DNA of 64,000 bases from Trichoplax adhaerens. Lineage: Eukaryota; Animalia; Placozoa. A program made the position numbers and the translations under genes. Shown here one piece after another: positions 1-64,000 of the stretch. The stretch is taken from positions 5,724,008 through 5,788,007 of the forward strand of contig NW_002060943.1 in NCBI RefSeq assembly GCF_000150275.1, written 5' to 3'. Below the pieces are notes generated by a model. That model was given only the letters and a program-made list of their open reading frames with translations, was not told the origin of the DNA and did not search any database. Each line of letters starts with the position of its first letter. Position 1 is the first letter of the stretch.

Positions 1-3000
1 TTACTATCTACGCGATCTACAAGTCAGTGATTATTATAGATTTATTTCGCTGATAATTAAGATCAAAACTTTTACCAAATATATTGCAGGCAATGAGCGC
101 CCTGCTAACAAAATGAAACTGAACGGCTGGACGATGAGAATGCACTGCTATGGTTACGAATCGAGACTACAACTTTGCCAGGTGTCCAAGTCGAACTTAT
201 TTATGAACAGTATCCCATGTCCAGATAATTCCTATGTGTTTGTGCAATGTCAAAAGCCTTGTGCTACATCAGGTATAGAGATGAAAGCAATAAAATATTG
301 AAATACTGAATGTTCGAGGCTATTCTTTTAATATAATACGAAAGCGAATGCTAATAATCAACACATACATGCATATAGCGTAAAATTAGGCTTATTTAAT
401 CATAAGACATCGACTACTGACAAACTTACAATTACACAGTTACTTTTCTCCAATGTGAGCGTAAAACATTTAGATAAAAGTTATCAATGATTTAGTTTTG
501 CGTAACATTCAATGCATAATGACCCCAATATATTTAGGAATTATTAACTTGTGATATAGATTTTTTGATTGTAATCGGAGATTAGCATTTAAGTAGGGCC
601 AGCGACTCATTTTATGTCGTACACGTAGATTAATTATTATTCATACGAGCAGTCCATTTGAGAAATACTACCGTATATCTATCCTTTCGGAAGAGTATAA
701 AAATATTCTAATCATAGCAATTTAACATTACAGAATTATTAGTGATCATAAATTACTTGCTAACATTGCTAATAAATCATCAATTAGACCCTTATGGTAG
801 TCCTACAATTTGTTCAACATTCGAATGCGGCTTATGCAATTGGAAAAGTACCATCCTTCATGGAAATATTGGTTGGAATTGGTTTCCAAAACAAGAATCT
901 CATCAATATAGATATAGTCCATTATCGGCTAATTCATTAGGTTAGCCATGACAGAGCCATTCTGTTAAAAGTATATTCGCACTATAGCTATCGAATAATA
1001 ATTATTTTACTCACGTTTATTCAAACCAAACAAAGTATCAGTGTTTATTGGTATAAGTATTAGCGCTGAAATTCAACAAATCCTGTTTTAAAGTTAAATT
1101 GAAAAGTTTTTTCATATTTTTTCATTACATTAATGAATTAAACACCTAACTTTCCTATATATTATTCCCTTATTTTACTTTCTATTCACTCCTATATAGT
1201 GGCTCCCCCTTTTGCTTATGTCGTTAGGCCTCCAGAATATGACCAGCAAATGATTGCAAAATTGGAAAGCCCCTTACTTAATTTAATATCGAAGCCATTG
1301 CAGGTAAGATCAGAATTTTTATTTATATTCAATGAAAATGAATTATCTTTGAAAAGAAGAATATCAGTGGGAGTTTAAATTTATAGGTGCAACTGATTGA
1401 TAAAATTTAATACAGCATATATTTCGAGGAGAAAATAATAATTAATATCTGACGAGTAGTCAAATACTGAGCGTTAGATATCCAGAACCTGGCTATAGTT
1501 GTATATTCTAACTCTAATTAGAGAGCAAGTTAGATTAAAGATTTATAAAGATAATTTTAGATGATATAAATCGATTACCACATATGCAAATAGCACATTT
1601 GTTATTCCTATGAATTTAGTAAACCCCAATCCAATCAAGTCACTATTGTACGTGACAAAAAACTAATAATATCCACTTCTGCTTAGCCCAACATTGCTTT
1701 TTAAACAAATACTACGGCAAAGTACGATAACTGAATAATTTTGCTAAAATTAACTACATATAGCAATCGACAGTAGGCTTTATAGCCGAGATTTCATTAA
1801 TAGTTCACGCAATAACAGCATATTATTTGTTTTCAGTATAATTCTGGAAGATTTGTTTTCATCTCATAGTGAACTTCATGCGCGGAAAGTATACTGTTGT
1901 TATATATTTTATCGATCAATATTACTTCATATTGCCACCTTATAACGTTGCATGCATTTTTCAATTGTACTATTGTATTTAAATATTATAACAGTATCCT
2001 AGCTTAGCTCAGTTTGTCTGATCGAAGTTGAGAAAATGCTGCAGATATATCAAATTCTATTCTAAAATTCTTGAAGAGTTATCATAATACTGTACCTTAA
2101 GATAGAAAATCTAATCACATTTTATCATGAAACAGAATGCAAATTGCTAGTCCATAATTTTCGTAGAATTATAAAAATTATATCTAGGATATCGATTGAA
2201 GACTGATAATAGAATTTAATTTATTAAATTTATCATTTCTACATCGCATACGATGATATGACTAGAGTTAATGACCGGCTAAATACATTCTCTGTACGCT
2301 TGATTTTAGATTATGATACACTATGAAGTGGAAGGAAATGACCTTAGTCACTACCAAATTCATGCTGTGGATGAACATGAACATCTTATCAATTTTACCA
2401 CGGTTAACTTGCATGCCGTTTCGAAAAATCAGCTCACTAAGAAAAGCGTAATTTATCCTCATCATTCAGGAAAAGTAAAGGTGTGGCTAATTATAATTAT
2501 AATAAAATTAGTAAAAGCGAAAGAAATGCAATTGAATATTTTTATGCTCTTTATTTGCTGCAGATCGCTTTTATTGTAATTTCACTTGCAGTACATAAAA
2601 GTCATCAATCTAGTGCCTTCATATTGCACGACTTCATCGTCAGCGGAGCAGAATTAAGTATATATATATATATACTAAGAAATTAGCTAAAAGTGATTTA
2701 TAGCCATATAATTGTAAGTCGATCAAATAGTAATGTACTGAGGGAGTAAAAATTCGGAATTAGGGTTAGATACATATTTTAAAGCATTTTAGGTGTTTAA
2801 ACATTCAGATCCATACAAATCTCTACTGTGCAAAGTATGGTAGTATTTACAAGAATAATATGACTAATTCTAAAACAAAATAATAGAAAAATTTGTTTAT
2901 TTGTTTGCAAGTAAATGTTTCTTTGTAAAATTAGTAAAGCATTGCCTTTATGCTTGACATTATAAGAGGTAAATTATGAGCAAATCTGTAATTACTTACT

Positions 3001-3311
3001 CTATCATTGCAGATAGAAACCGCTCTTTTATGATCGGCATTGGATTTGTTGGTTTCGCTATTATATTTGGAATAATTGGAGGAGTTTTCTACTGCATTGT
3101 ATCAGCCAGGCGTGAAGCTGCTAAAGCAGCCTCAGAAGATCAGGAAAAATCCAAAGAAAGTTCAAGCGGAAAATCCCCAGGTTAAATTAAAATTGAATAA
3201 CAGATATTTTATTGGCTAAATTAAAGAATTATAATTGCTATATATGTAATTTTAGATGTGGAACTAATGGAAATGATATCGTCGAGAAGCAGAGACGTAT
3301 CAACTGTGTAA
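1..3311 (+). CDS. Paralogue A (5'-truncated by window): SRCR2 - MAM2 - TM - short tail ending SRDVSTV*
   Basis: Hand-spliced GT-AG exons that keep frame: 1-22, 90-272 (MHCYGYESRLQLC...C...C, second half of SRCR), 788-940 (CSTFECGLCNW, MAM start), 1200-1303 (AKLESP), 2310-2480, 2564-2657, 3013-3180 (TM FMIGIGFVGFAIIFGIIGGVFYCIV), 3256-3311 (TAA). Exon order and phases match paralogues B, C, D and F. Confidence 0.85.
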
Positions 3312-5837: not shown

Positions 5838-5871
5838 GGCTGCCATGCAGATCCTATCGAGCTTTATTAAG

Positions 5872-8800
5872 ATGAAAATCGTTCCTTTACGTTCGTTTCT
5901 ATTGGCGTATGTCCTGATATTCTTTAGCTTTACTACTGGAACTGGATCGGAATTTTGTCCTAACAATTGCAAATGTAGCGATACAGAAATTAAATGCTCT
6001 AACTTGATAGCACCTTCATTTTCTATCCCAACGGGAATAAAATCCTTGTAAGACTATCTTTACCATACTCATACACAAATTTCGTGAATTGCTTTAAATT
6101 TAGATTGATTTTTCATTTAATTCAGGTAGTATACGTTATGCTTTCTGATATCGCAATCTAAAGCAGCTATTTAAAATGTCAGTAATTACCAAAGCTAATT
6201 ACACTTTTGAATTCTTGATTGCGGGTTTTCCGTGACCTTTACTTTCTTCAACGTACTTAGTTACCGCTCGTTATTATCTCTAATTTAATTTTCAGAGATT
6301 TACTATAATCAAGTTTTTGCGATAGTGAAATATCAGTAAACTTGTAGATATTATCAAAGGACATGTATTACAGTATGTTTTACATTTACTAATTTAAATT
6401 CATAAGCTTTAATAGGAGTATCCGTTTAAGGATAATTATTTTATTTATGATTTTACAAGTAAGGCATATCTAAGTCATACGAACTTAACAATACAATTCT
6501 GAAGTACTGTAGATGGTAACTATTCACGATCTGACTAATAATTAAAGTTCTTACATGTAATTAATCTTATGAAACAAACTCTAAATCTAATTTAAATTTT
6601 ACTACGCTTATTTGGTACTTTGCATTCAATTAACTGAATTTCTGAATTTTTGACTGTTGTATAAATTCCAAAGTACTACGATGGAATAAATTGCTAGCTT
6701 ATTAGTGATTTAGCTGATATGAAAAGCATAAAATTAAGATATAAATGAACTCGTGCATATTTCAAAAATTATAGGTTATTTGAACAAAGGATACCTTGTG
6801 ACTGTAAGTATTTATTTCCTCTTCTGTGGGCTGCCAGACTAAAAAATGTAACGGTAGATGGCTACTGTAGTACGCCTTCACGCTTTAGAAACTATCACCT
6901 GGATCGTATGTTCGATTATTTATTATGTGATAACAACTTAAAAGCAGGTAAGACGCTATGTTTTGTAAATTTCAATAACTTTATTCAAATCAAAGACTTT
7001 CGACAACACAACGTGTCTAATACTGTACTCTTTAAGATAATATTGAGCTGATAAAAAGCTTTGTGTACTAATTTTCACTTACTACTTTATTACAATACAG
7101 GTTTCAAGCTATCTTCAGTCTATGAATTTCACCGTAAGTTATGAAATGCAATAAATTCTATCAGGATTCATTAATAACTAGAATCTGCACAACCTTACAA
7201 TACTATCAAATTAATATAAATGTTATCGCAGTCAATGAAGCATCTTTAAGGATAAAATAGTAAAGTACACGATCCAATATAATGAATAATAACAGTCGCT
7301 CACGAAAAGTGCCGATTTGACATTAGCTGGTATACAGTGTTTTTAGTCCTAACTATGTTCCATTATTTCTAAAAAATTTCGTAAATATCTTTAAAGTATT
7401 GGTGATATATTAATAATGTTCTATAGTAAGAAATAATAGTATTTCTATCATTCTTCATGGATTACTGTCCTGCTAATGACACAGAACACAGCACCAATCT
7501 TATAAATGTACTTTATTTACATTTCATATCTTAGTTAAACCGAAGCATTCTGCAGTTTGTTCTTTCGATAATGGCTTGTGCGGCTGGCAACAACTGGCTA
7601 ATATCGATTTCTTCGACTGGAAATATCATCATAGTGTTGGCTCTCAATCAGTGAATGCATACCAAGAAGGAATTGGTAAAAAATCGTAAAATTTAGAATA
7701 ACTGTCAGGATTGTTTCAACCTGTTACAGTTAGGTAGCGGATATCAAAATAACGTCAACTTCAATCTTTTGAGATACTTTGATTTGACGGTTTACAATAC
7801 ATAGCTATGATTAAGACTAAGTTTGATTATATACTTATTACAAATCGAAATTTGCAACATGGAAAAAATGAAAAATATTTAAAGAAAACCAAAAATTACG
7901 AGTCTACTGTCACGTTTATCCTCTCTTGATACCTGCTCACAGTACGACTTTAAGAACTGATGACAACCATCGTCTGAAGAAACTGTAACCACTAGTATCT
8001 TAATTACACGAAAAATTAACGCAAATATTATTGAAAAATCCATCAATTTATACTTTAATCTACATAAGCAGTGAAAAAATTCATATTACTTAGATAATGT
8101 TAGGAAACTATGTGTATTTATCTATAAAAATATATTAGATGTCATTGATAAATTGTTGCCAATGCATTCCTGGATAAGCTATCTTATGAAAACTATGCTA
8201 TAGCAGCTATAAAAAAGCTACTCCGTAATACTATCACCTATTATTTATCGCACTTTCCTTAATTTAGAGGATAGTTAAGATAAGGTTGCATTAATGCTTC
8301 AGAAATATAAGTTCCTCGACAATGATAGTTCTTCTGAATATGTACGAAATATAGCAATTAGCTGTAGTAACTTGGAATAAGATATTAGCTGTATCTGCGC
8401 GTGATCAGAGTTGACTATGTGAACATAAGTTAACTGTAAATGAACCTTGGAATGAATTTATTAAGCTAATCAACTATCGTGTGTATCTGTCATTGGTATA
8501 CCCTAGGAATGTCTAACGCATGCTTAATTTTTTTAATTATTTGTGATTGTAGGAAAAGAGAGTAATAATTATATATATATTGAAGCATTTAACAAAAAGC
8601 CCGGGGAATATGCCGACATCATCAGTATACCATTGTTGTTAGCTCACGGAGTTTCTACTGTTATGGTAAGTAAAATAAATAATTTTCTAACACCGGTACC
8701 TGTTTCTGAACCTTTTGAAACTTTGAGCACGCTTAAATAACTATTAGTAATTCTGTTCAATTATACTTTTATAACAAGAATAAAAAATTATTTCAATTCT

Positions 8801-11800
8801 TAACTTTAGCCGTAATGAAAGGTATAAAATATGCTTTCAAGTTTATTAAAATCTCTTACATGCACAGGTCACCTTTTCCTACCGCATCTTTGGCACAGAT
8901 AATTTGCAAAGGATATATGTATACGCAATTTATCCGAGATTTAGCTCGGATATGACTCTTATTGGTACAGTACAGTCGCCAAATGAACGAAGCTGGATGG
9001 AATATTCAGTTAGCTTTCATCCGGAATTTAATAATTATCAGGTATGATATTGGAATGGTTATGTTTCGGAAGAGGTACTAACTTAAAAAAATTACTTTTC
9101 TGAGTTACTACCATTATACGATACTATTAGAGTAGTTTGTGTAAGAGATATTGTAATTGTCTTATGCGAAAATAATATAGTAAAATTAACAGCTTTCTTA
9201 ATTGCTATAATCTCTGCTTTAGAATCTTATCGCATAATATATTTTACTCTAAAACAAAAACTAATATAATCTTTACACAGATATTAATTCGAGGTGCCGT
9301 GAAAACAAATAACGCTAGTACTATCCAAATTAATAGCATTGCAATTATTCCACAAGGTAATTAAGATCTTGCTTTAAATTTTTAAATTGCTTATTTAAAT
9401 TGACAAGCTGATGAATGGTTACCTTGTGTTTAAATTTCGAATCATCAACGTTTACACTAGATTATTACAGTAAAGTTTTCTAGGCTTTCATTTTATACAT
9501 TTGACCTATTGATTGCTTTTATAATCGAAAAAATCAAGAAATCAATTGTTATACTGAAAATGGTCAGTATTATCGAGGCCAAAATCACCAAACTATAGAC
9601 GGCTATGAGTGCAAGGATTGGCAATCTCAACGGTCAATTCCCCATGTTTCTGCCATGAAACGTAGCAAAGATGATCTCACCTCAAATTACTGTCGAAATC
9701 CTGGCAGTTATAGGTCGAGACCATGGTGCTATACAACTAACCCGAATGCACAGTGGCATTATTGCAATATTCCAAAATGCGTTGAAAGTGTAAATAACTC
9801 TTACACTTATGCATTAGGAAGTATGTTCGATTAAGAGTCATGCTAACGTTATTAATGTAATCACGTGTACTAACATTTGGTTTGATATTATCGCATTAGA
9901 TAAATATCCGGTTCAGATAGTAAATAAAGACGAGAATTCTGCTAATTCCGGTCTTCTAACGCTGTTTGCTAACGGGCAGTGGGGAACTGTTTGTGGTGAT
10001 AGGTTGTCGGTACATGCTGCATCTGCTATATGCAAACAAACTAATAAGGGCAACTATGGATATATAACAAGTAATTTCAGTAACAGAACATGCAATATGG
10101 AAATATTGATTGATTCTTATTAATTGAAATTCTATTTATCGAAATTTAAGTTGCTACTCTTTCAAATTATTAAATTCTAATAGGAGGCAGCTTTACAGGC
10201 AAGGACAAAGTACTAGTGCGCGGATCCGATATTAAATGTAATCCAAACGCTGCAGGATTGCAAGATTGCACAGTGTATGCAAATCCTTCTACTCAACAGT
10301 GCAGCCATAACAAAGATATATGGATAACTTGTTCTAGGGATCAAAACTCTAGAACTGGTGGTTTTGGGGGTTAGTAAATATATTTGTAAATACATTTCCC
10401 TCTGAATGTTTACGCTCATATAATTGTAAAGTCCTTCTCGGTCTGAAGTTCAAAACTTGTCGGCGTATTTGCTTTATAGTTGAATTAGTTGACTCATCGA
10501 GTCCTAGTCAAGGCGAAATAAGAGTGATCAGAAACAACGTTGCAATCCCAGTTTGTTACTCAAATTTAAGCATAGTAGAAGCCGATGTAATTTGTCGTCA
10601 ATTAGGATACACTACTGCTGGTGGCATACAAAGTAAGTTAATAATTTAAATTTTACCACCTGTGACCATATTTAATCAAACTTTCTAAGAGTTTCTAGAC
10701 ATATAAACAATCTATTTCGAGTACTAATATCAGCTAGAAGATTATATTAAGAAATCTGATACATCATCATTCCTATTTAATTTAGCATATCATCCTATTT
10801 TGGATGCAACGGTCTGGGTTACTTATTTTAAGTGCAAGGGCTACGAATCATCCATTAACGACTGTGTAATAGAGGTGACAGACTTAAATCGGCCTTGTTC
10901 GTTAAGTAGTAGAAGGACTTTCGCACGGTGCTATGGAGGCCAGCCATCCAACGGTTTGTAGAACGTTGAATGATTTCATTCTAATACTATTGATTACTGT
11001 GAAAGTTTTTGTGCCGCAGTTGATATGACCCTTCTATATATTGCTGCTATAGATGTTAATCCAACTATATGTAATTTCCGATTTGATTTCTGCGGTTGGA
11101 AAAACACAGCTCAAATAAAATGGCTTTATGCCACAGAATACTCGTACAAATCAGGTCGTTTTGAACCTCTTCCAAATCTTAGCGGTAAATTATTAATCAC
11201 TTCTGTAGTAATTCTTCTCCATTCGCTCTTAATCGCTGATGAGAAATGGTATTATTTTGATTTCATGGACGCTTATCTCGTCACTTATCTTTGTACTTAG
11301 AATTTTTTTTCCAAGCATACATTTACGCCTATTTTCCATCCTTAACCACCGGAAGAGCAATACTTTCAAGTCCTGCATTCAAAGCATATGGCCGTTATGC
11401 AGCCTCTGTAAGAGAGTAACCAGACCAAAGTTACAGTGATAAACTCATAGCTAATAATTTAATTTCCTAGGAGTTACTTGTACGATCAAATTAGGGTGTT
11501 ATAAATCAATCGCACACTCTTTCATAGGTATATTTTAGATATTTAACACATAATTTCAAAGGACGATTTTACGTGCGCTATCGAACGCAAGATACAACTG
11601 AAACATTATTTCTATTCAACGGACAAAATTTCCCAACTAATACTATAGCACCAACTGCACGGAATACCTCAAATTCTAGTGCTGATCCGACGACTGTAAG
11701 TATTCTGTCATCGCATAATAAAATTTGCTAGGTAACGAATATCGTAAGGGATTTATGATTACTGAGAGTAAAGTTAATTAAATCCCTGTTACAATGTTTC

Positions 11801-13094
11801 TCAAAATTTTTTGATACACATTCCTAAACGTAACATGGATTTAGTCATCTTAAAATTGAAATTCTAAATTCGCATAGCAAACCAAGGAAAAAAATTTAGC
11901 AGCTTTCTAGACTATTTAACCCGTATTACTTTAGGCACATATATTTGATTTATCTGTAAAAGAAATGTTATGAAATTATATTTGCTTCGGTTCTTTTCAA
12001 CAATGATGTCATCGGACTGTAGTCCCTGTTTACATTTTCTACAGTATGTAAGATAATCGCTTCAAACAAAGACTTTTAAATACTAGCATATAACCAACAA
12101 TATGCGAGTACGATGCCATCAGCGATATTGTTAAATTTTAAAGTCGCTATTAATAGTATATGATAAAATGTATGAGTTTATTTATATCAAACATCGACAA
12201 AATTGCCTTTACTCCACAGCTAAGTCGATGACTGTAAATTTTATAAATTTTATACGATAAAATACGTACGAGTATATTGGTAGACCTGTAGCTTGCTATC
12301 GTTGATCTATACTATTTCATGATACATGTTTAGCCTCCACAAGCCCTTTATAAATGGATTAACATAACAACGATCTCAATTCCCGTTATAAATTTTAAGG
12401 TAAGTACCTAGCAGCTGTTATATTAACAAATCATAATGGCATATCAATTGTAAATCAAACAGTTTACTGTAAACTATGTTGGTAAGTATAAATTTTAATT
12501 TGTAAATTTTACTAATTAAGTGGAAATTTAAAATAACTTAAATGCCAGTCAACATATGAAACTTAGCTCGTCTTAGTATATTTATTTGACTCATTTAGAT
12601 AATTATGGTTACATATCTCTAACTCTAGAATTTTTTTTAAATGAAATCCTAGATTGAATTTGAGGCGCAGTTGAACTCTCCTGATATTCACGTCAGTGAA
12701 GTAGTTGCAATTTCCACCTTTGAAGTTCAGGGCGTTGCTGCTTATGTCAGTAAGTGTGATCTGCAAAAACTTTGTCTAAAACAAAATTTATACTAGCTAA
12801 TCTTTTCGTTCTTCATGTTGAATTTTCCTGCTATTTACTAAAGACGATTACTGTTCTAAATCTATTATATCTTTCAAATTCTCACGTGCAGAGCCTGGTC
12901 TGATAAGTCTAGTTGGTGTTGGTTTTGCTGGCGGAGCAATCATGTTATCTCTTATTAGTATTGTGACATACTTAATCTGCAAAGCAAAGCATAATCGATT
13001 AAACAGATATGTCGTTTATGCGCGTTTTCCAATAAAGACAGTGACTAAAGATGGCCATACACAAGAAGCAGCAAATGCCTTCAGAGATGAATAA
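5872..13094 (+). CDS. Paralogue B, complete: SP - LRRNT - LRRCT - MAM - kringle - SRCR - SRCR - MAM - TM - short tail
   Basis: Open spliced frame: 5872(or 5845)-6047 (signal + CPNNCKC...C...IP), 6775-6947 (IPCDC...YCSTP...LLC), 7101-7133; MAM1 7535-7675, 8553-8665, 8868-9041, 9281-9356; kringle 9539-9820 (YRG...NYCRNP...RPWCYT...YCNIPKC); SRCR1 9900-10070, 10184-10369 (GQWGTVC); SRCR2 10480-10632, 10786-10953 (ADVICRQLGY, CKGYESSINDC); MAM2 11053-11184, 11301-11407, 11528-11695, 12334-12399, 12653-12749; TM and tail 12892-13094 (TAA). Confidence 0.88.
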
Positions 13095-23900: not shown

Positions 23901-24210
23901 CTGTAAATTTGATAATTTTAATTATTTCCTTACGCTACTTTGCTGTTAAATGTTGTTTTCGTTAATTTCCATCTAAGCTCAAAAGCGTCCAATTTTACAA
24001 ATTGCTTACTTCTATATATGAATTTTTACTTCTACTAGGGAAAGAAATTAAGCCCGAAAATCACCCAATTAAAAAAGATAGCTTTAATATATCCTCTATT
24101 TACGATTTTTTAGGTTATTTTTAATACAAATTATTTATTTTATGCAATTCTGAAGCAATTACTATTGGTTTTTATATCTGCTATATATTAAATTAATGTT
24201 ATACTCTTAG

Positions 24211-40147: not shown

Positions 40148-41353
40148 ATACGCCAAATCCTGCAAGCTTTTATATGCTGCCCCTTATCAGTGGGAAGAAC
40201 TATACTAGCGGTTTGGTGCGTGTCAAGTATGGAAGTAGGTATGGTTAGATATGTTCCAGCGATTGGAATCTCCATGCTGCAGATGTGGTTTGTTGTCAAA
40301 TTGGACGCATCACTGCTTATACTACTAATCGTAAGTTTTTCATGCTTGATAGCGCCCGTATTAAATTAGTTTCTAATTTTCAACAATTAATATATAGTTA
40401 CAGTGAATATGTATCCTACAAATCCGGAAGCAATTATTTTTGACATCAGCTGTTATGGACACGAAGCGATTATCGATAGTTGTAATATATCAAGATCTTA
40501 CTCTAATTGTGCCTCATTCCCTGTTAGCGCTGTTTCTTGTATTCCTAGGCAAAGGAAATACAGTAAGAGATTATTAAACAAAGTCGTTCAATAGCTACAC
40601 AGATATTGTTTTATTATAACAGATTGATTTAATCACTTTAGAATTTAAGAGCAAAAAAAAGCTATTTCATATCGAAGCAGTATCTTTTAGATATTTAATA
40701 ACAGTCTGATTCTTACGTTTCAGTTATTTACAACAGGCCTACTTATTGCTCATTTCAATATGGCATGTGCAGCTGGAGTTCTAGTGGACGTTCAACTTGG
40801 AATGGGCATCCACAAGACAACAAACACTTTAAGCCTTTTACATACTCAAATTGTAAGCTATCAGACTAGCATGAGCAATGCTGGTACTTCATGTAGCTAC
40901 CTGTTACAACATTGAGCAACATCCATAATTAATAAACTTTATTGGATTTCATATTTTATAGACTTAGGATTTGTATATGTATGCATATCGAGCACAGGGT
41001 AGTACTAGCCCTGTTAAAGCAACTTTAACTAGCCCTCTCATATGCCAAGAATCATATCGAACTCTATATGTATGATGAGAGTAACAAGTATAATATGATG
41101 CTAAAATCTTGCTGTTATTCAATCATAAAATGATCACTTAATTTAGCTGTATCTGTCACAATATTTTTGAATGAAATTTGCACAGATTTCCTTGCTATAC
41201 AGCACCATCGGAAATTCTTATGATTACTTGAAAGTTTTTTATGAGCGCGAACGAGGATCAACGTATACTTTATATAGAAACTTTGGCTTAAGCTCTGGTT
41301 CAACTTGGGTGCAAGCATATACTAAAAGCTTTTATTCATATTCTTCGTTCTAC
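40148..41353 (+). pseudogene. Paralogue E: SRCR2-MAM2 fragment, pseudogene
   Basis: Exons 40148-40330 (in-frame TAG at 40246-40248 in 'YG*ICSSDW'), 40398-40562, 40724-40852, 40962-41069 (4-nt TATG duplication at about 40976-40983 shifts frame), 41186-41353. No signal or TM exon found nearby. Confidence 0.82.
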
Positions 41354-49700: not shown

Positions 49701-52700
49701 ATTAGTTCTTAATAATATACATACGTTAAAGTCTTAGCAGATCTCACTAAATTATCAAGCCGCCCAAGCATGCTTGGGTTATATTACTATGTATTTAATC
49801 TAAACATTGTGTATGATTTAATTTTCTGAATGATTGCGGTATCCATAGGATATGGTATCGCTGGCGTTGGAAAAGTCTGGTTGGATTATACTCGTATTGC
49901 TTGTCCGGCATCAAGCAATTCGATTAACAACTGTACTTTAGGATCATGGGGTAGCACTTACGGACATAGCTCTGATCTTTGGCTAACATGCTCTTGGCAT
50001 TCTACAAACACAACTGCAAACCCAGCTGTATCTACATGTTGGTCTCTTTTAGTTATCCTAATCTTGTAGCATGCAATTGCTCTTCTTGTATTTAGCATTT
50101 ATTTTTCTACAATTAGCACCTTAATATATTTTTCAGTTGTATTTTAAAAATTATATATCTTTTTTAAACTTTCAATAATATACCATCAAGCAGTCTCTAC
50201 TGCAAATTTTTTAAGCTTATACAAGTTAAGTCTTCAAGACGGAAGAAATTCAACAACTGGTTGGGTTCAAGTTGATTACAATACTCGATCTGGTGCAATA
50301 TGTTCATCCAGCTGGAATTTAAATAGCGCTGATGTAGTTTGCCGTTAACTAGGTTATATTGGTGCATATTCTTTTAATTGTAAGTAAGCTATGCTATTAT
50401 TGCCACTTCTTCCTGATTGACTAATTTTATTCCTGCAGTTAATGTACATAATACTACTATGTAAGACACTTCATTCTCTCTATAAACAGCTTTATCTGGC
50501 TCAGACCCGCCGTCAGCAGTTACTACTGTAATTAGTTATATATATTGCCGCGGATACGAACCAAGTATAGATGCATGCACCTTAAGAACTACTCCCTCTA
50601 TTTGCTATTCATCATCGATTCGTCAAGTATCTTGCAATCCAGGGCGATCGATTTATTGTAAGATAATTATATTTAATAAATATATAGGTCAACCACATTT
50701 ATATTGCTTGGTTTATTAGAGCAAAATAGGATTTCACCTGCAGCATTAATTGTATAAAGCAATGAGTTATTGGTTACGCTGATATTGCATTTAATAACCA
50801 TTATACCATCGTATCCTCATATTAGTCAGTTATAACAAGCCAGAATACTGCACATTTCAGTATGGTCTCTGTGGCTGGAAAGCAACCGGAAAAAAAACAT
50901 GGATTTGGTACCCCCGTAATAGCGGGCACTTTTCTCCTTTTGGAGGACAAAGTTGTGAGTAGCACTCATACTTAATGATAATTTGATTTTAGCAATACTA
51001 GCTAGGGGAGATATATATTCAATACTGCATACACTCTCGATAAGGTTATTTAATCGTAAAATTAATTTTTCAAAATATTTCATCAATATCTTATAGATTC
51101 GTCCTTTATATATGCCTATCAAGCTGCCAGGTCTACCGCAGTTGTAGCAACACTAGTTAGCCCTCGAATATATAGAGCATTTCGAACACAATATGTACGG
51201 TACTTATGGCAATAACATTCCTTTAATGAAATATAATAGCTGTACCTATTTATTTGATTGGATTCTGTAGGTTCGATTTCAATATTACGTTATGGGCTAC
51301 AATTTTGATTCTTTGGTACTTTCGTACAGTCCAAGTGCTTCAGTTAGTTACACCATCTACAGTACATACAGATTAAGTTCTGGAGTGAAAGGAGTTTGGA
51401 TCGGGAAATCCAGCAATAGCTTCTATCCGAATGGAAATTACATAGTAAGTTCATACTTTATAGTTTATAAATATGTCAACACCAACATTCAGACAAACCA
51501 TTCTCTGGATGTAAGAAGTCACTGAAAGCAATTGCCTTTAAGTTTACATTACCATAATCACATCACGTATGTCCAAACAGATCTTTACATTTAGAATGCA
51601 ATTGATGTAGATATTAAAGCGACTGTATCTCAATGCAATACAAGTTGGCGAAACCAGTTAACACTTCAAATCATATTTTAAACTTTCTAGCTAAGATTGG
51701 TCTGTAAAACATACTCCGGATCTCCATCTTCAAGTTCTGGTGTTGGATTTAGAAATATAATTTTATTTTATGGATATAGTTCATTTGTTTCAACCTATAC
51801 ACCTACCAATGGTATGTACTCATATAAATACTTCAAGAACTAAACTATTTGCATTTAACATAGAAATATGATAAATTTTAATACTCCTAAAGAAAGTTTC
51901 GTAGGTTCAAATCTGTCTTTCGTCAATGTAGGCTACAATCCTCATGTCAACGTTACTAGCATAATAATTGGCGTTACGGTAACAATTATACTTATAATAT
52001 TCGCAATTATAATATTTACGTACCGACATCGCTATATAAACTCCCGTGGAAGACCTTTTAATAGTCCTAGCTCTGGAATGCCTGTACCCGGAACAAGAAT
52101 AACTAATCCTCCACCAAATACTTCAAGCAACACCTCTACTGCACCACCACCAGGTATAGTAAAATGATTCTTTTAATGGTTTTGCCCCAGCTATTCATAT
52201 TATAGTCAGCTTTCTGAGTATCGTAGTCGCTGCATTTCTTCTAAGAATTCATATTTTAAGATCCATACAATTAATACCGGGGTCTTTAGTAAGTCACCGT
52301 ATTAGTCTATTAATAGTCGCAGAACAATAAGCTACTTTTGAAAACAATCATGATTACTTGGCAAATTTTAAAATGGTATTTATTTGATTAAGTTGATCAG
52401 CATTCTTTAAGCTTTTAAATATAAAATGAAATGCTGTATTGTATCATTATTATTCAAAACAATGGAACTTAGTTACAGCCTTTATAACTAATGATGCATA
52501 TTAATTCCATTTATTGCTTTTATGACTATTTGGCGTTGTACCGTAGCATATGGTGTCGCAGTGACCTCACAAACTCCAGGTATTTTACAATAACTAGTAT
52601 AAATGAACACTGTACTTATCAAACCGCTACGTTTCTATTAAAATCGTAGCGGCCAATACTATGTATTCTCTCATCTCAATGATTATCTCAATTCGGAAGC

Positions 52701-54470: not shown

Positions 54471-57400
54471 ATGGTATTGAAAACTTTTTCAATTTTCTAC
54501 TTTGGTCTAATTTAAAATTTCTTCATCATCGTTATCTGTGGAAATTGGGTAATAATTTATGATGGTAAGAGCGATTGCCCAAGCCATTGTAAGTGTAGTG
54601 TATTACCACTAGTCTTTCTTAAATAAAACCGAAGCCAAATTTTATTTAAAAAATCGGCCACTTTACAGTCAATCTGCACAAAACTAAATTTCTAGTGCAG
54701 AGATAATATCATAAAGCTATTTTGCCTTGCCTTTGGAAAATTATCATCTACAAGATAAGGGGAATACACTGACTTGATGAGCTCTCCGTTACATAGAGCA
54801 ACAAAATAGCTCTATGGTTGAGGTAATTTATCAATTTTATTATTCGAAAGAACATAACAGCTAATTGATTATTTCAATGATCCGTTTCTAATTTCAATTA
54901 TATCATGAAGTTATAAACTATAATGACAGTCTTGATCTAGATTTTATTACATATTTCTAAAAGTTTTTATACTAAAGTAAGGTAACCGAATCAATTGATT
55001 GTTGGAATAATATTAATTAAAAGGGCTTAATTCCTTTTTATAGCTCGATTAGCCTTGCTACCACTACGGAAAAGGACGATAATAAGTTCTGTTAACTGTT
55101 ATGGATTTGAGCCAAGTGTTGACTACCGCACTGCAAGCAATACTCTGTCTAATTATTCATTATCGTTGATTTGCCAAATATCTTGTCATCCTGGGCAATC
55201 GTGTAACAGTATATCAATAAATATTCAGTTCAGTTATTTAATTTTCCTTTATATCTCGGAAAGAATTGAAACTCTACACCCTGCACTTATAAAATAAATC
55301 TATTTTAGGGGTAGTAGGTATACATTAACTAAATATCGATTGATTTTACAGGTTTACAATAGCCAGTAACAACGAGCCTCAGCACTGCTCACTTCAATAG
55401 GGTCTCTGACCCTGGATAGCTACAAGTAACAAAACCTTGGATTTGGCATCCCATCGATGATACCAGTAGCAGACACTTTCAGTCTTTTTCCGAACAAAAT
55501 CGTTAGTACATACTGTATCAATAACTTCACGGCTACTACTGTAATAGCTGTAATATTTTCATGATACGTCTCCCATTAATGCGATCTTTGACCATTTGTA
55601 TTTCATGGCTAAATTTTGCATAACCCCCTGTTTTTGGTACTGTAGTTCTTCAATCACGATTCACATACGCTAAGTTATACTGTTTCAAAACTGATATCTC
55701 AAATTAGTATTTCAATCCATTCGAGATTTTTCCTATGCTTACGCATATCGATCTACCGGTAGCTTTGCTCAAATTGAAGCAACGCTAACTAACCCTCAAA
55801 TAGATGGAAGATCATTAAGCCGGCAAAATGTAAGTACAATGGCATTATCGTCTATAGTAATGGAAGTTGGCGAAGTCAAATATTACTGAATACAATTACA
55901 ATTACTGTATTATTTATGGATTTAAGTGTCAGGTTACATTCAAATATTTTGTAATGGGTGACAACTTTAGATCTCTATCGCATATATATTATATATCTTT
56001 AATTTTATCGTATACTAAATTACTGTTATCCTTTCATCAGAACGCACGCTAATGGCAAGAATCGAAGATATATTATTCGATACAATTTATGATTTATTCA
56101 TTTGAAACTGGGGTTTCATTTGAAAACTGCTTTTAATTGTTAATAAGGGCTTTTCTGAAAGCATTCGTACATTACCACCGTAACATTAAAATAAGCTTAC
56201 GCGGAATTAGTGCTGGTGGTTGAATAATAATATTTCAAAACTTTTTTAGCTTAAAATTTCTTATAGTTAAAACATAAAATCCTCATCTTCAGCTTCAAGT
56301 GTTGGAATCAGAAATATAATTTTGCTCTATTCACCTTGATTAACTATACCTACTCCAGGTACGTTTAGAAGCGTTAATACATAGAGCTGTTGCCGGCTAA
56401 ACTGAAAATTGAGCAAAACTATAATTATTCTTTAAATGCGGTAGGCTATACCACACCTGTCAATATTACTGACATAGTTGCTGGATACATCGCTTCTATC
56501 GTGTTAATTATCATAGCCGCAACTACAGCAATTAATTATTGGTCATGACGATACTATTAGACAAATTCGAACGGAAGAACTGCTACTGGTGTTGAAAATT
56601 CTGAAGTTTCTGATACAAAAATGAATAGTACTCCACTATTTACTACGTAATGAATACTGACAGCACACAACAACCTGGAGTAATAACATTTGGAATCAAT
56701 TCTTTTATTAACTATTTGCATCATTAGCTTATCTACATGTTCTCAATGCTTTCTATGGAAATAGAATAACATTTCTTTCACAGCTGCTCACAAATTCTTT
56801 TAGTAAATATTACTTATGACCACATCTAATGGCGTTTTTATAATTACAGTAAAAATTATGTAATATGCTCGAATCAATTATTTAATATACTCGCAAATCA
56901 AGGTATTTGGCAGAACTCGAATCGCGGTTGTTTATTTGCAATTGACCAGCTTAACTGTGCTTAAAACTAGCTTTTTTGCCATAAATTTTATCAATTTTAC
57001 AATAAGTTACTGAGTTAATGTAATTAAGCTAGTAGCCGAATTATCAATCGATCTTTTGCAATTCTGTATCACTCATGTTGCACTACAGCTCATCCCACAG
57101 AGACAATATCTAAAACATATAGTAATTGGCAAATTTATCGCAGCTAAGCTCATCGAATCGTTATGTTTCAACATCAATATAGGAATGTCTTATTATTAAT
57201 CTATATAATTTCTACCAAAGTATTACCGATTAGGGAGTATACGTAGCTTCATCTCCCTTTACGTTGGCTCAGCCAGTTTATGACCGTGAACAGTGGATAG
57301 CCTCCTTTTACAGTCAGCTACAATTTGTATACTGATATTCAACTTGCAATAAATCCAAATAGTAAGATTTTATTTCTTTGCGTTATTTTCAATGTTTAAA

Positions 57401-57620: not shown

Positions 57621-58610
57621 TAAATTATTATGCTGTTATTTATCGCCTATAATATTTTTGCTACCAGTAATATTAACTGTTGCTGGTACAAGATATTGAC
57701 CATTATCTTGAGGTGATGTCAAAATTTAAATGATAGATTAGTAAGGTGGATATCTTGAATTTAAATACGTTGACGTAAAATTATCTTCGATTTGACCCCT
57801 AAAAATTTATTGTTGACTAAGTTCACGGACGGATATCTTCTTTGTGATTGGGTCAAGTGTTGTATGCAAAATTGAGCGGTACTGTTATAGTATTATCGGC
57901 CGATGTTGTGATTCTGATAGTATACTCTATACACTATGCTAAGCACTAGCTCGTGTAGAATTCTATATTTATAAATAAGATTAAAAATAAAATCTAACTA
58001 AAATCCCATAGTGCGGTGTCAGTTATTTACTGTGTTCACAATCAACGAAGTAATAACAGTCTTGGTTCTTAAGATTCATATATTAAACTTATAGCGAATA
58101 ATATATCCTGACTAACATGCTAGCATAATAAATGATTACAAATTGAGCATATCCACATAAATAGATATGTATCATTCGTACAGAAGCTTTATTAACCATA
58201 TTTATGCGAATACTCAAAATTTAACTATCTCTTCCTTAATCATGAGACAGAACCGTAAAGTAACATGTAAAAGCAACGTAATATTTCTGCAATAATGCAA
58301 AATAACAAAGTCTGCACTATATTGTGTAATGAATAGTAATCGGCATAATGATATTAGAATTATAATGTGGTCGACATGGCACGTGATTGTCACAATTGTA
58401 AAGATCAAATTTAGCACCTTGTGAATATATTGTGTACATATGACGTCAAAGATGTAATCTTTGCACCAATATATAATAGTTATCAACGTTTTTATTCTAA
58501 TTGATCAATCAAATTTTACCGATATATATAGAAGTAGTAATACGTGAATTAGGAAGAGATAGTAAATCGATAGACTGAAGGAAATAGCCATATCGTAAAC
58601 GATAACAAAA

Positions 58611-61600
58611 ATGGCATCGAATGTAGAAATGATTGTTCGCGTTTATTTAGGCATGATTATAATTCCTTTACTAGCTACTGGTAGTAAAATAATGTTTAAG
58701 GATGTAAGAGATGATTGTCCAAGCGCCTGTAAATGTAGAGATCAGGAAATTTCATGTAATTATTTGCCTACTGAGAGAGACTTTTTTGTGCCAAAATGGA
58801 CGAAACTTCTGTAAGCAGTTTTATTTCATTTAATTTTTATATCTTGTTTATCAATTACACATTAATTTAGTACAGCAATAGATTAATCGATTGAAAATAT
58901 TAATTTAATACAAACATGTATAAAGTATTATTTTGACTAATAGTACATGCTAATCCTTACTGATACACCATACTTTTGTGGCATTACTGTGCCATCATTA
59001 GAAATTAGAAATTAGCCACCAATCTGCTAATTCATATTTACACAAAGTTTAAAAATCTTACATATCCCTAAAAATAATAGCAAAAATAATCACTAATCAT
59101 AATTTATTGCTTAATCTGTAGTCAAATAATATATTATTCCTATTGATGATTAAAAAATTTTTAAGGAGTATAGTACATAATCAGATCCAGTGCGGCAATT
59201 TAAAATTTTTCATTCATATTGTAAGAAATTACTGAAATTAAAAGTACCAAGTAATTATTATCATTTATTATTGATAAAGCAAATTGACGCTAATAATTAA
59301 TCTACTCAATCTCTGATACAACTTTGTTTATTGGGAAACAAAACTTGCTCACATCAAGAGCAGACTACCATTCACTTATTTTATAGCAATCTTACTAGTG
59401 TTTATTAGCAAGTGATTGTTTAAAGTTTTAGGTATATATGTAGTATATTCTCCACTTCAGCGTTCCTTTACTTTTGGTCATATAGTATTAGAGTAGGCGT
59501 TCTACTTCTAAGGGCATTAACTTCTAATTACGTAAAATTATTATTACTAGTTTCATCATCTCAGAGCCTTATACTCGGCCAGAATTTAAAGAAATCAACT
59601 TTTCCACTTTTCACTTTCCTCCTTAAATGTCTCTTTCTAATAATAACTACTAGATAAATCTTAATAACTGTAATGTCAAATACCACCAATTACCGTGACA
59701 TTCTATATAAACTTGTTTATTACTGCCGACGGTATGCCATGATTCTACTTCTTTAATTTCAGAAGATTGATCATTTTAATATTTAAGATAAAGCTAAAAA
59801 ACATGTAACGGTCTCTTATATATCTAAAATGAAATTGTAGATCTTACATTTTTTTTGGAGCTGTTCTATAAGATGCTGAAATTTATAGAATCAATAGGTT
59901 CAAAGCGTTATATAATGTAGATTGCATGAGTTATAAAGAAATCTCTTATTTATATCCATCCTTATATGTACAATACTCTTACGTAGAGTAAAAGTATAAA
60001 CGTTACCTTGTAAGTGTATTTCAATCTAAAAATCAAAGTGCTAGTATAATCGTAAGGCAGTAGAGCAACTTCGTTGCAATCATTTATCAATATTTGTATT
60101 AAGTCTCCTCAATGACTTAAAGTTAGAGTTAGAAATGATCGCTAGCACTCATTCATCTTTACATTTTATGCGTAAGTAATTATTAAAATTTACAAGTTAT
60201 CTGAGTTTCAATGGAAAGCAATTAGCAATTGTAATTTCTTCGATAAATTTGGTTACAACTGGATCTGTATTGCGACGAAATCATATTAAAAGTATTTTAA
60301 GATCCCTAAATGGCTAAATTAGACCTTTATCTCTTTGCCAATTAACAATCCAACGCCTATCACTGTTTCTATCTAAGCGATATCACGATGATAAAGTAAT
60401 AGATTAACGATATAATAGCGATAAGATTACGATCACCTTTAGCATAGAACTGAAACAATGTAGTAATAACTCAAAGTATATGTGTATTATACTAAATAGT
60501 ACTACAATAATCATTTATCTCTGTTGCGTGTTTTTTTTTATTTCCAATCTTAGAATTACCTATAAAATGATACCCTTTATAAGCAACATGTTTCACTCTA
60601 TTTTTGTATTATTTTAATTGCGTAAATGATTCGAGGTTGAAATATTAACAATACAGGATGCACCTACGAGTATAGTGCAAGATTATACCAAACGGATGAT
60701 ATTATTGGATCGCATACGATCTGTACACGGTATAAAATGAAACTTTTATTTCAATACTGCAAAGGTTAAAAGGAATTAATATGTAAACAACATTTTTATT
60801 TAACTTGTATAATAACTTCAGATTAGAAATAAATTGTCTTAATTCCAAGAAGGCAATAAAATCGAGTAGATCTATTGCCGTATCGAACGCTAACTACTCC
60901 ACATATTAGTACGAGTATATCGCAAGCGGTGTAGGTTTTTGAAAACGTTCTAAACACATAAACTTTTTCTGATGTCGCTATGCTCAGGATCATTAAAAAC
61001 GCCATTTCCTGCGAAGACAAATATCTAGATAGATTGAAGAATTTGATCATCCCCAATCAAATCAAAATAATTGGCAAATGTAGCAAACCCTCAAGTTTGG
61101 CAGGGCGAAGACTATCAAAACTGATCGAAAACAGTCATTCTCTAAGCAAATATTCCCGTAAGGAAAGATCGGACCATACGAGTTATTACTCCTCAATATA
61201 CAATTTCACAGGTTCATAATTTTATTTTACTTATATTTAAGGATACCTGTAAATTACAAATTACAATGCCGACTAGAAATAACATTAATGACTAAGTTAA
61301 AGGCTACTCTCGTATGCTAATAAATTTACCTGCTAAGTCTTTAATATGAATACAAATTTTCTCAGATCCAGCCTACACTACCAGTTGTAACTTTGACATT
61401 GATCTGTGCGGATGGACACAGTTAACTTTAGTCGATTTTTTTAATTGGACTCGCATTAGTGGTTCTACCACAAGCTCAAGTACAGGACCAACCAACGACC
61501 ATACTCTTAAAAATTGTATGGATTACTAACTATAAATGAATAACATGTTGAGGATATTATTAGGCAGGAGTTTGAACTTCAGATCTATTAAAAGCATTTA

Positions 61601-64000
61601 ACTGAATTTAATAGTAATAAACAATGCTTAACTGTTGCTTGGATCTAACTATAGCTTTAGGTTACTACCTTTATACCGAATCATCATGGCCGAGAAAGCC
61701 TGGTGAATATGCTGATTTAATGAGCCCTCCACTAGCTACGGCTTCTAACAGTTCAGTAGTCGAGGTAATATGGAAATAGAGTTAAAAGTATATTGCCAAT
61801 TAGTAAGAATTCAGGTAATATTAGAATTGATATTGTTCTTCATATTAAACGGTACCTATATTTTTGTTTAATTCGTGCTATACCAATAGAAACAATGATG
61901 AGCAAGATACCTATAAATCTTATGCTATAGCATATATACTTTAAAGATCCTAAATTTTGATTAATTTAGTATAATACCTTAGCATGTTGACTAATTTTAT
62001 AAACCAAGTAAGAATACTACCCGTACTAACTCAAATTAATACTACTTAAATTTGAAAAGAGAAAGTGATTAATTATTGAGATTTATAGAATATATAACAT
62101 AAGTTGGTGTCGCCAGATAATAGCAAAATAGGTACCGCATTAGTCGCAACGAATGTTGTAATTCAAATAGTGTAATTAACTTATAGCATACTTTACCTAA
62201 CCGTAAATATTTACTATCACTGTCTCCTTTACAGTCCGTTTTGTGAAATGCTTGCATCAATATTTAAATATCATCATTTTACATTTGATCAACAATTATA
62301 CCTCTTTATAATGCTCGACTTTAGATTAAATTTTACTATCATGCATATGGTTCAAGTTTGGGTAAACTTCAGATATATGCAATGTATCCAAGAATTAAGC
62401 AATCAATATATCCTATCAAGAATGTTAGCTTCTATTCTCTTAATTCATGGCGCTCATTTTCTACAACATTTCGCCCACTTCATAATCCATATCGTGTAAG
62501 TAATGTAACTTACCAGCATTTATCTTTGAACATAATCATTAAATAAATAATATGAGTAAATAAATAATGCTTGACTATGGCATGATATTAATAACTTGAA
62601 TAAAATTGTCTAACTTCAAATATGCTAGATAAAATAAAATCATATTTCGATACGAAATCTACAGGAATTCATATGAGATCATTTATTTTCCATGCTGTAT
62701 AACTAGGTTATTATTCGTGGAGTCGTCGGATCATCATTTAAAAGCGATATTGCCATCGATGATATCTTCGTCTCTGCAAATGGTAAATTATAAAAACAAT
62801 ATTATCTAACATTCGTTGTTCGACAAGATTATTTAGCAATCAAGTCATACAACTATATTTTGACATACTTTTTGGGTACCTCATAAATAGAGAAGCAGTG
62901 CTATACTCGGAATAATGATGTCTATCGAGGGTCAACTTCTACCACCCAGTCTGGTTTAACATGCCAATCATGGAGTTCACAGTATCCTCATTCTCATCCT
63001 TTTACTCCATCAAATTATTCTAACAGCGATCTTATATCTAATTATTGTCGAAATCCCGGTGGAGTGCGCAATGGTCCATGGTGCTATACGATCTCTTCCC
63101 ATCATTCTTGGGAATATTGCAATATACAACTTTGCGCTTCTCCACCTAGCAGCACAGCAGAGTACCCTTTAGGGGGTATGTTATGATATACTGGTAGATA
63201 ATTGAAATAAAGCTAATAATTGCAGTTAAGGACGCTGCATCTCTAATAATATAGATATTAAAATACATTACGCACTATGAGAAAATTTAAATTGAGTTTC
63301 ACTAGTAGTTAAAATGAAGAAAATTATCCTCGAGATCTATGTTAACCAAACATACAGCATAGCTTACAAATATAACTCTTTCGAATCATTGTATATAGCT
63401 TACTTTACTTTATTATTATCGACGACTTAACGATAAATATATTAATTGTTATTGATCACACGTGAGTATAAACACATGGTAAAATATTTTAAATTGAAAT
63501 TTATCATATTTCATTAACTTGCATACTTATATTTCTTACATCTTCATCTCTACGTAGTTCGCTATCCAGTTGCATTAGTTAATTTGGACGATGGTAATCT
63601 TAACGTGGGTCGCGTAGTTATTTATCATAACGGCAGATGGGGTACTATCTGTAAAACGGGACTATCAAATCAAATTATGGGTCTATTTTGTCAGCAAGCT
63701 GGTCTTGGAAACTCAGGCTCTCCACAGAATGGTAGGTTGTATCGCATCGTGGCATTTTATCCTTAATTATTAGTAATTTAACCGATAGATTGCAGTATTT
63801 CACTGTGATATTCGCATCCACATTCGCGTATTATATTTTTCACTAAGACCTACTAAATATATTGATTAGTAAGATTGTTAAAATAAAATCCTATTTTTAC
63901 TCGCTTGCTTTCTTTAGGAATCGTTAATAATAACCATGGGTTTATGTGGCTAGATAGTAACAGCATTTCGTGTTCATCAAACGCAACTTCCCTCATTCAT
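58611..64000 (+). CDS. Paralogue H (3'-truncated by window): SP - LRRNT - LRRCT - RKER - MAM - kringle - SRCR...
   Basis: Exons 58611-58810 (signal + DDCPSACKC), 60988-61211; MAM1 61366-61515, 61655-61764, 62325-62495, 62707-62782; kringle 62891-63175; SRCR1 63558-63731 (GRVVIYHNGRWGTIC), 63918-end. Open frame; most similar to F by eye. Confidence 0.87.

Follow-up and report, generated by a model that had tools for sequence, protein, structure and literature searches.

We analysed a window of 64,000 nucleotides from Trichoplax adhaerens (scaffold C1414:5,724,008-5,788,007, plus strand; assembly of 105.6 Mb in 1414 contigs). The window has a G+C content of 30-35% and holds a tandem array of genes for predicted mosaic surface proteins. 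An open reading frame (ORF) scan, together with an exon-profile map, found eight co-oriented paralogues on the plus strand, here named c0 to c7. The array continues past both edges, as a preliminary description of the DNA had claimed. In stop-to-stop frames of the plus strand the same exon types recur. These encode a signal peptide with the LRRNT motif C-P-x2-C-x-C-x6-C, an LRRCT-like unit, MAM domains, a kringle, SRCR halves and a transmembrane segment. MAM exons start with the pattern C-x-F-[DE]-x-x-x-C-G-W and the transmembrane helices are followed by basic residues. The preliminary description named the order LRR cap, MAM, kringle, SRCR, SRCR, MAM, transmembrane segment for the array of eight. 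That order, with a signal peptide before an LRRNT/LRRCT cap, was found for c1, c5 and c7; it does not hold for the other five. Two of these, c0 and c3, have a short architecture of cap, SRCR, MAM and transmembrane segment.

The c7 gene shows how the modules are joined. Its features, as far as they lie in or reach the window, are these.

58587 to beyond 64000, plus strand: c7, intact, transcribed, full architecture; 18 exons, 975 amino acids; gene end at window +3131
58611 (ATG) to 58810, plus strand: c7 exon 1 (E1), signal peptide and LRRNT
60988-61211, plus strand: c7 exon 2 (E2), LRRCT and linker with R-K-E-R/S
61366-61515, 61655-61764, 62325-62495 and 62707-62782, plus strand: c7 E3 to E6, first MAM domain (MAM1)
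62891-63175, plus strand: c7 E7, kringle
63558-63731 and 63918-64085, plus strand: c7 E8 and E9, first SRCR domain (SRCR1)

RNA contigs of four runs, from four studies, were mapped onto window 58500-64000 (5.5 kb). The spliced contigs X15 (3363 nt) and X10 (3075 nt), with pieces in X4, carry the junctions from the cap to SRCR1 in three studies. The junctions are 58810>60988, 61211>61366, 61515>61655, 61764>62325, 62495>62707, 62782>62891, 63175>63558 and 63731>63918, and all are GT..AG after alignment shifts. The joined frame is open. It runs through signal peptide, LRRNT, LRRCT, a linker with the R-K-E-R/S site and an N-F-T sequon, MAM, kringle and SRCR. Since single spliced contigs join the cap exons to the MAM, kringle and SRCR exons, the LRR cap is part of the receptor mRNA. 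Thus, c7 is expressed as one mRNA, and our analysis adds that its LRR cap belongs to one protein with the other modules. In X4 only, an alternative GT..AG junction (58810>59551) uses the donor of exon 1 together with a cryptic acceptor in intron 1. We rejected this as a productive isoform; it meets a stop after 24 codons, and is either non-productive or partly processed pre-mRNA.

The preliminary description had treated the LRR exons as belonging to the same gene as the MAM-kringle-SRCR exons, and for c7 the spliced RNA confirms this. The alternative is that the gene model is an artefact, the cap exons being separate small genes upstream of MAM-kringle-SRCR genes. The JGI models do begin downstream of the cap. 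Furthermore, c2 lacks a cap and so does c8, the next copy downstream, where signal peptide and linker share one exon. Conversely, spliced contigs of 3.1-3.4 kb join E1, E2, MAM1, kringle and SRCR1 in three runs, the joined frame is open, and the annotation of Trichoplax sp. H2 (hereafter H2) makes the same join. The artefact is refuted for c7 and, overall, we find it hardly credible.

The c7 orthologue in H2 is RDD37230.1 (P0268, 957 amino acids), which is 100% identical on most exons. It has the same cap-to-MAM join, with exon 2 ended at 61157, compared with the transcript donor at 61211 in three runs. The donor in RDD37230.1 is thus 54 nt too early, and so the public protein lacks 18 residues (61158-61211), including the R-K-E-R/S site and the N-F-T sequon. 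Hence, this work provides a transcript-backed gene structure where prior public models were fragmentary or, once, 18 residues short.

The full architecture is also found in c1 and c5. The c1 model draws on Pfam matches of its exons, tblastn of P0021 and a same-phase splice model with an open frame; the c5 model draws on exon profiles and a same-phase splice model.

5845-13094, plus strand: c1, full architecture, ~17 exons
5845-6047, plus strand: c1 signal peptide and LRRNT
6775-6926, plus strand: c1 LRRCT
7535-9356, plus strand: c1 MAM1 (4 exons)
9539-9820, plus strand: c1 kringle
9900-10360, plus strand: c1 SRCR1
10489-10953, plus strand: c1 second SRCR domain (SRCR2)
11053-12773, plus strand: c1 second MAM domain (MAM2)
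12913-13091, plus strand: c1 transmembrane segment and short tail; stop at 13092-13094
43724 to ~52164, plus strand: c5, full architecture
43724-43926, plus strand: c5 signal peptide and LRRNT
46035-46273, plus strand: c5 LRRCT and dibasic linker
46460-48261, plus strand: c5 MAM1
48372-48653, plus strand: c5 kringle
49486-50037, plus strand: c5 SRCR1
50194-50657, plus strand: c5 SRCR2
50346-50348, plus strand: c5 in-frame TAA in the first SRCR2 exon
50826-51778, plus strand: c5 MAM2
51905-52164, plus strand: c5 transmembrane segment

Copy c1 appears intact; its 3' exon borders and its LRRCT/MAM1 junction are approximate, as the RNA mapping covered c7. The JGI model TRIADDRAFT_51904 (541 amino acids) covers only part of the gene. 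The TAA of c5 replaces the Gln codon of a C-R-Q-L-G-Y motif. The alignment of the H1 reference with H2 (position ~1735) shows that it is specific to H1, the codon being CAA in H2, where the annotation has a 984-amino-acid product. Hence, the stop either arose recently in H1 or reflects an error in the assembly, and could be a null allele in the former case. The ancestral GTAAGT donor downstream of the TAA is still in place. We considered bypass of the stop by an upstream donor at 50343 and dropped it. Use of this donor would remove the SRCR core, and so we take the TAA for either a lesion or an error of assembly. In SRCR1 of c5, two of the six cysteines are gone.

Copy c2 was found by tblastn, exon profiles and a same-phase splice model, with its first MAM exon above the Pfam cut-off.

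24044-28958, plus strand: c2
24044-24113, plus strand: c2 linker exon
24211-25629, plus strand: c2 MAM1
25794-26072, plus strand: c2 kringle
26310-26839, plus strand: c2 SRCR1
27001-27532, plus strand: c2 SRCR2
27621-28367, plus strand: c2 MAM2
28555-28955, plus strand: c2 transmembrane segment and tail; stop at 28956-28958

The linker exon matches the tail of an LRRCT exon by homology, and from the linker onward the frame stays open to the stop. The exon-profile search found neither signal-peptide nor LRR-cap exons for c2, and no ATG occurs in the open frame that surrounds the linker. TRIADDRAFT_51905 (305 amino acids) is a fragment model of this gene. A cap is also absent from c8 (window +71,225 to +76,933), the orthologue of H2 RDD37228.1, where a single exon encoding the signal peptide and an R-R-F-K-R/S linker takes the place of the cap exons. 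Thus, the cap is optional within the family.

The short forms were placed by exon profiles; for c0 there are also local alignments to c7 and c3 exons and ORF translations, and for c3 a same-phase splice model.

1-3182, plus strand: c0, 3' part of a short form
128-253, plus strand: c0 SRCR second half
787-939 and 1208-1276, plus strand: c0 MAM
2973-3182, plus strand: c0 transmembrane segment and basic stop-transfer
32597 to ~37633, plus strand: c3, intact short form
32597-32802, plus strand: c3 signal peptide and LRRNT
33463-33632, plus strand: c3 LRRCT
33849-34337, plus strand: c3 SRCR (2 exons)
34488-36763, plus strand: c3 MAM (4 exons)
36898-37124, plus strand: c3 transmembrane segment
37412-37633, plus strand: c3, possible Q/P/Y-rich tail exon

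The 5' exons of c0 lie upstream of the window (signal peptide/LRRNT at ~-4650 to -4399, first half of the SRCR at -278 to -138). No MAM1, kringle or SRCR1 exon was found between its LRRNT and SRCR exons, and the same three modules are absent from c3.

The remaining two copies are dead.

40153-41365, plus strand: c4, dead fragment with SRCR (2 exons) and MAM exons only
40246-40248, plus strand: c4 in-frame TAG inside the first SRCR exon, read by direct translation
54471-56548, plus strand: c6, old pseudogene with most exons missing
54513-54515, plus strand: c6 TAA in the signal peptide; LRRNT truncated after C-x-C
54759-54803, plus strand: c6 lone piece of MAM1 exon 4
55082-55195, plus strand: c6 SRCR second half with cysteines lost
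55371-55491, plus strand: c6 first MAM2 exon with two in-frame stops and a frameshift
56378-56545, plus strand: c6 transmembrane exon, terminating right after the helix

Copy c4 is a pseudogene, and the exon map contains neither 5' exons nor a transmembrane exon for it. For c6, the signal-peptide stop (54513) is also read in H2, the other lesion intervals are free of differences between H1 and H2, and H2 has no gene call. As a separate observation, H1 and H2 differ at 8 of 2101 positions across the c6 region (54500-56600), compared with 14-16 per 2 kb in flanking intergenic DNA and 1.1% in c7 introns. This low divergence may be due to chance or residual constraint. The mixture of intact, shortened and dead copies that the preliminary description had seen is therefore borne out by the exon map and our reading of the lesions.

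The intron phases of c7 are 2,1,1,0,0,1,1,1,1,1,1,1,0,0,1,1,1. All module borders (cap|MAM1, MAM1|kringle, kringle|SRCR1, SRCR1|SRCR2, SRCR2|MAM2 and MAM2|transmembrane) are in phase 1. Each SRCR is encoded by two exons, and the intron within it is also in phase 1. Splice models of the other copies were built from ungapped anchors and a phase-constrained junction search. When the c7 phases were imposed on c1, c2, c3 and c5, same-phase GT-AG junctions with open frames were found at every intron, in agreement with the earlier view that exon phases are conserved. In c3, and in c0 by exon content, the cap leads directly and in frame to SRCR2, MAM2 and the transmembrane segment. The jump from LRRCT to SRCR2 in c3 joins two phase-1 introns and hence keeps the frame. 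Thus, phase-1 introns at every module border permit in-frame module loss, which accounts for the short forms c0 and c3. On the gene models, module borders in phase 1 are what exon shuffling classically leaves behind.

The window is the centre of a larger cluster. Exon profiles were made from the best copy and searched over 204 kb around the window, giving an ordered exon map. The preliminary description had proposed extending the contig to count copies; by this map the whole cluster has ~19 loci across ~195 kb. About 11 copies lie outside the window, four of them upstream. The plus strand has another four downstream, and the minus strand carries three. A genome search with PF00051 located 4 kringle exons inside the window; for the interval of 5.68 to 5.87 Mb on the scaffold the count was 13.

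Little else was found between the copies. Pfam searches of the longest minus-strand and intergenic ORFs found neither another gene nor a transposase, and the ORFs of the 11 kb gap that separates c1 from c2, a gene-poor stretch, gave no Pfam match. One further feature lies in this gap, found by self-blastn of the 204 kb region.

15228-16146, strand not applicable: interspersed repeat copies, 70-80% identical to copies at window -20.6k, -13.4k and -3.5k

The gap also contains weak relics at 19148-19956. An LRRNT-like C-x-C-x6-C is followed immediately by a stop (19148-19192) and there are SRCR-like snippets at 19655-19699 and 19918-19956. With scores near noise, these may be a ninth, fully decayed copy. 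Two tandem-repeat arrays, with periods of ~298 nt and ~70 nt and units 80-96% identical, lie between the plus- and minus-strand copies of the cluster (window +113,409 to +115,128 and +124,527 to +125,255). Elsewhere, very long open frames (3548, 1597 and 1078 amino acids) at C1404:650,000-777,000 (minus strand) encode dozens of MAM domains, each complete and without introns. One frame there is listed as 17,421 amino acids at C1404:717726-718013, and the 3548-amino-acid frame also has a kringle.

The paralogues are strongly diverged, as previously described. Amino acid identity is 23-65% per domain, with c5 and c7 the closest pair and MAM2 the most diverged domain. By self-blastn, only two exon pairs within the window could be aligned as DNA, plus one pair between c8 and c9, two copies just beyond it. 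The near absence of DNA similarity between copies indicates that the duplications are old. H1 and H2 are 99.25% identical over 28.4 kb. In c7, they differ at 6 of 2925 exon positions (0.2%) and 64 of 5596 intron positions (1.1%). For c7 and c8 pooled, the non-synonymous divergence (dN) is 0.0026 and the synonymous divergence (dS) is 0.0049. Non-synonymous sites of the two genes are 4.4-fold less diverged than c7 introns (p=2e-7). Across the four RNA runs, which carry two organism labels, 40 variant sites were listed for c7, 5 in ~1.5 kb of exon and 35 in ~4 kb of intron; the rates are ~0.3% in exons and ~0.9% in introns.

These comparisons bear on the proposal, made in the preliminary description, of self/non-self recognition. 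Such a locus would be hypervariable, with alleles under diversifying selection. The genes are indeed a clustered, diverged family of surface proteins undergoing birth and death, and the c5 nonsense allele differs between H1 and H2. However, the two genomes are nearly identical over 28.4 kb, coding DNA is less diverged than c7 introns, the pooled dN/dS of ~0.5 is not above 1, and the listed variants of c7 are mostly intronic. An allorecognition locus is thus disfavoured, and we judge it very improbable. The region of c7 is, from these comparisons, under ordinary constraint rather than hypervariability of the allorecognition type.

Turning to the proteins, MAM, LRRCT and other units are split into short exons, and so the full-length H2 orthologue was used for domain calls. 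P0268 matched Pfam MAM twice (119.6 bits), Kringle (83.6 bits) and SRCR twice (104.8 bits). P0021 matched PF00530 (SRCR) above threshold in two stretches (97.9 bits). Single exons of c1 matched Kringle (77.4 bits) and, in four cases, SRCR half-domains (18-31 bits); one MAM exon gave E=0.087. A six-frame genome search with PF00629 placed first MAM exons above the cut-off at 24234-24371 (c2, 35 bits) and 46471-46602 (c5, 32.8 bits). Exon by exon, Pfam had no match for most MAM exons, the LRRCT exon or the tail exons. The kringle has 6 cysteines in c1, c2, c5 and c7. MAM1 keeps only two. The SRCR domains have 6 cysteines each in c1 and c2, 6 and 7 in c7, and 4 and 6 in c5. By convention, group A SRCR domains have six cysteines and are encoded by more than one exon. 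The domains here are of the group A type as judged by Pfam score, cysteine count (except c5 SRCR1) and two-exon layout.

The N-terminal unit has the C-P-x2-C-x-C-x6-C motif, and its Pfam LRRNT score of 18.9 bits (E=1.2e-3) is below the 25.8-bit cut-off. Every structural neighbour of the Atlas model is an LRR protein (TM score 0.53-0.62 over residues 29-116). A profile of four LRRCT exons was compared with solved structures (PDB). The best matches were mostly LRR C-caps (E=0.09-1.7), with the Nogo receptor first (E=0.09) and SLITRK, LRRC4 and Slit also present. Cysteine pattern, weak Pfam score, structural neighbours and C-cap matches together give a lead, not proof, that the unit is an LRR cap. 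Intron 1 of c1, c3 and c7 contains no ORF for an LRR repeat; hence, the putative LRR unit would be an N-cap joined straight to a C-cap. Hidden repeat exons in intron 1 were accordingly rejected for these copies, and a single consensus match in c5 was given no weight. In platelet GPIb-beta and GPIX, an LRRNT cysteine knot and an LRRCT are separated by one repeat at most and so are nearly contiguous. Their capped LRR makes up the entire ectodomain, whereas the candidate unit here is an N-terminal add-on, with weak cap similarity, that some paralogues lack.

In the c7 model, the N-terminal signal peptide and C-terminal transmembrane segment indicate a type I, single-pass orientation. The tails share a basic juxtamembrane stretch and are otherwise rich in P, Q and Y, with a P-P-P-N-Y motif in c7. 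No Pfam domain was found in the tail exons. In c5, c7 and the H2 orthologues of c8 and c9, the linker before MAM1 has a dibasic R-x-K/R-R site and, after it, an N-glycosylation sequon. The site is possibly also in c3 and is absent from c1. It suggests that several copies are processed by a proprotein convertase.

Taken together, the predicted products are type I single-pass membrane glycoproteins. The ectodomain of each is assembled from shuffled modules in a row, and the tail behind the transmembrane helix is short, non-catalytic and little conserved. The preliminary proposal of a lineage-restricted, type I surface-protein cluster evolving by birth and death fits the pseudogenes c4 and c6, the short c0 and c3, the H1-specific stop of c5 and the ~19 loci. 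We hold this account of gene structure and evolution with high confidence. Placozoans live on biofilms and carry intracellular bacteria. To our knowledge, they have no true Toll-like or NOD-like receptors. The proteins would be non-enzymatic binding receptors of the cell surface, most likely scavenger-like or endocytic, for bacteria, food or debris particles. The MAM domains may mediate oligomerisation and the diverged paralogues may present different binding surfaces. There is no known signalling domain; hence, the output would be uptake or adhesion, not a kinase or TIR cascade. As a whole, we lean modestly towards an ancient tandem family of surface receptors that are probably scavenger-like. 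Taken separately, the scavenger or uptake function is a tentative prediction, with adhesion as its main rival.

Several observations weigh against this explanation. RNA support is for c7 only, no recognisable signal peptide was found for c2, and the papers searched gave no functional, cell-type or induction result for any member. The pooled dN/dS derives from 17 changes and is not distinguishable from 1 (p=0.24). An acidic pair in SRCR domains serves cation-dependent ligand binding, as in the SALSA/DMBT1 and MARCO structures. Alignment shows this pair to be missing: the CD163-type W-G-T-[VI]-C-D-D-x-W compares with C-S-T-S in c7 SRCR2, and with C-K-T-G, C-N-S-G, C-S-K-N, C-E-S-L and C-S-S-S in other copies. 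For the c7 kringle, the best alignment is with plasminogen kringle 4. The lysine site of plasminogen K1/K4 consists of the D55/D57 anionic centre and the R71 cationic centre. In c7, G-G-V stands at the D-A-D position of kringle 4 and S at that of Arg71. With neither D-x-D and Arg in the c7 kringle nor the acidic pair in the SRCRs, the classical ligand sites are not conserved.

The lack of canonical ligand-site residues in SRCR and kringle can also be read as evidence of adhesion. In such a role, between cells or between cell and matrix, the MAMs would be homophilic or oligomeric, like those of RPTP-mu and meprin, with matrix as the ligand of the remaining modules. Each paralogue might then label its own kind of epithelial or fibre-cell contact. 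Two MAM domains per full copy, a tail with no signalling domain and good conservation between H1 and H2 all suit this role. However, a large and decaying tandem family with 23-65% identity between neighbours is more typical of receptors that face the environment, and MAM1 keeps only two cysteines. We consider adhesion unlikely, and prefer the scavenger-like receptors.

The preliminary description recognised no named family with this domain order, and here it was mistaken. Genes of the family are in GenBank as TRIADDRAFT_51904 and TRIADDRAFT_51905, with H2 entries RDD37228-30, and relatives are automatically named 'Neurotrypsin' or 'MAM and LDL-receptor class A domain-containing protein 2'. Furthermore, there is a published 'SRCR + MAM or Kringle' class (Kamm et al., 2019; BMC Genomics 20:5). 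These authors counted 45 SRCR-containing transmembrane proteins in H2, listed 21 H2 'SRCR + MAM or Kringle' transmembrane proteins as putative scavenger receptors (their Dataset S3A), and found most domain combinations to be phylum-restricted. Several of the 21 genes have consecutive locus tags. The class is defined by a transmembrane segment, SRCR, and MAM and/or kringle. RDD37230, RDD37228 and RDD37229, the orthologues of c7, c8 and c9, fit this definition and are thus putative members. The class appears as a table column and figure only; gene structure, LRR cap, cluster, pseudogenes and expression are not described (Kamm et al., 2019). The window gene identifiers had no match in paper texts, and papers on fibre cells and secretory cells make no mention of an SRCR-MAM-kringle family.

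When two family members were compared with 5.8 billion proteins, the full domain combination was found only in Trichoplax. When the c1 kringle exon was searched against the whole library, multi-kringle proteins crowded the matches, and the sole use of this search was to surface TRIADDRAFT_51904. Neurotrypsin (PRSS12) shares a kringle followed by SRCR domains. It is, however, a secreted serine protease, whereas the family here has MAM, an LRR cap and a transmembrane segment. The preliminary description had noted the lack of a protease domain, and P0021 and P0268 indeed have no match to PF00089 (trypsin); a transmembrane exon follows MAM2 instead. MALRD1-type proteins, the source of the automatic name of the H2 orthologues, share MAM domains and lack kringle and SRCR. 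LDLa repeats (PF00057) were found in none of seven family proteins. Class A scavenger receptors (SR-A, MARCO, SCARA5) are type II, with a collagenous stalk and C-terminal SRCR, whereas the proteins here are type I and none of the seven has a Pfam collagen match.

Three amphioxus mosaics (P0276-P0278; ~1460 amino acids; automatically named M130-like or DMBT1-like) share kringle, SRCR and MAM, and the sub-string SRCR-SRCR-MAM. They differ in their order (kringle, SRCR x3, MAM, SRCR x2, MAM, with CUB), lack the LRR cap and have ~25-38% single-domain identity. They are most probably independent shuffles. Tandem arrays of the SRCR superfamily in sponge and sea urchin also show exon loss between sibling paralogues, with kringle and MAM as frequent partners (Int J Mol Sci 2024;25:1515). 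An SRCR there takes three exons in sponge and one in urchin, compared with two in Trichoplax, which was outside that analysis (Int J Mol Sci 2024;25:1515). The category of the finding is thus unchanged: tandem SRCR mosaics are common in invertebrates and the family was already catalogued.

A more specific idea can be stated, which we regard as improbable. The family may be a placozoan-specific recognition system in which surface variants of MAM2 and SRCR discriminate microbes (food bacteria and intracellular symbionts). The cap-only LRR would then be a regulatory pro-piece, cleaved at the dibasic site, that switches the receptor on. If true, such a cap-release switch would be a receptor logic undescribed for SRCR proteins. 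For the family, exon shuffling in phase 1 and in-frame module loss are cleanly exemplified by the cluster, and our analysis adds an inventory of which copies are alive. Among the lineage-specific expansions of surface proteins in placozoans this family is one of the larger, and it is of interest for how these animals recognise particles.

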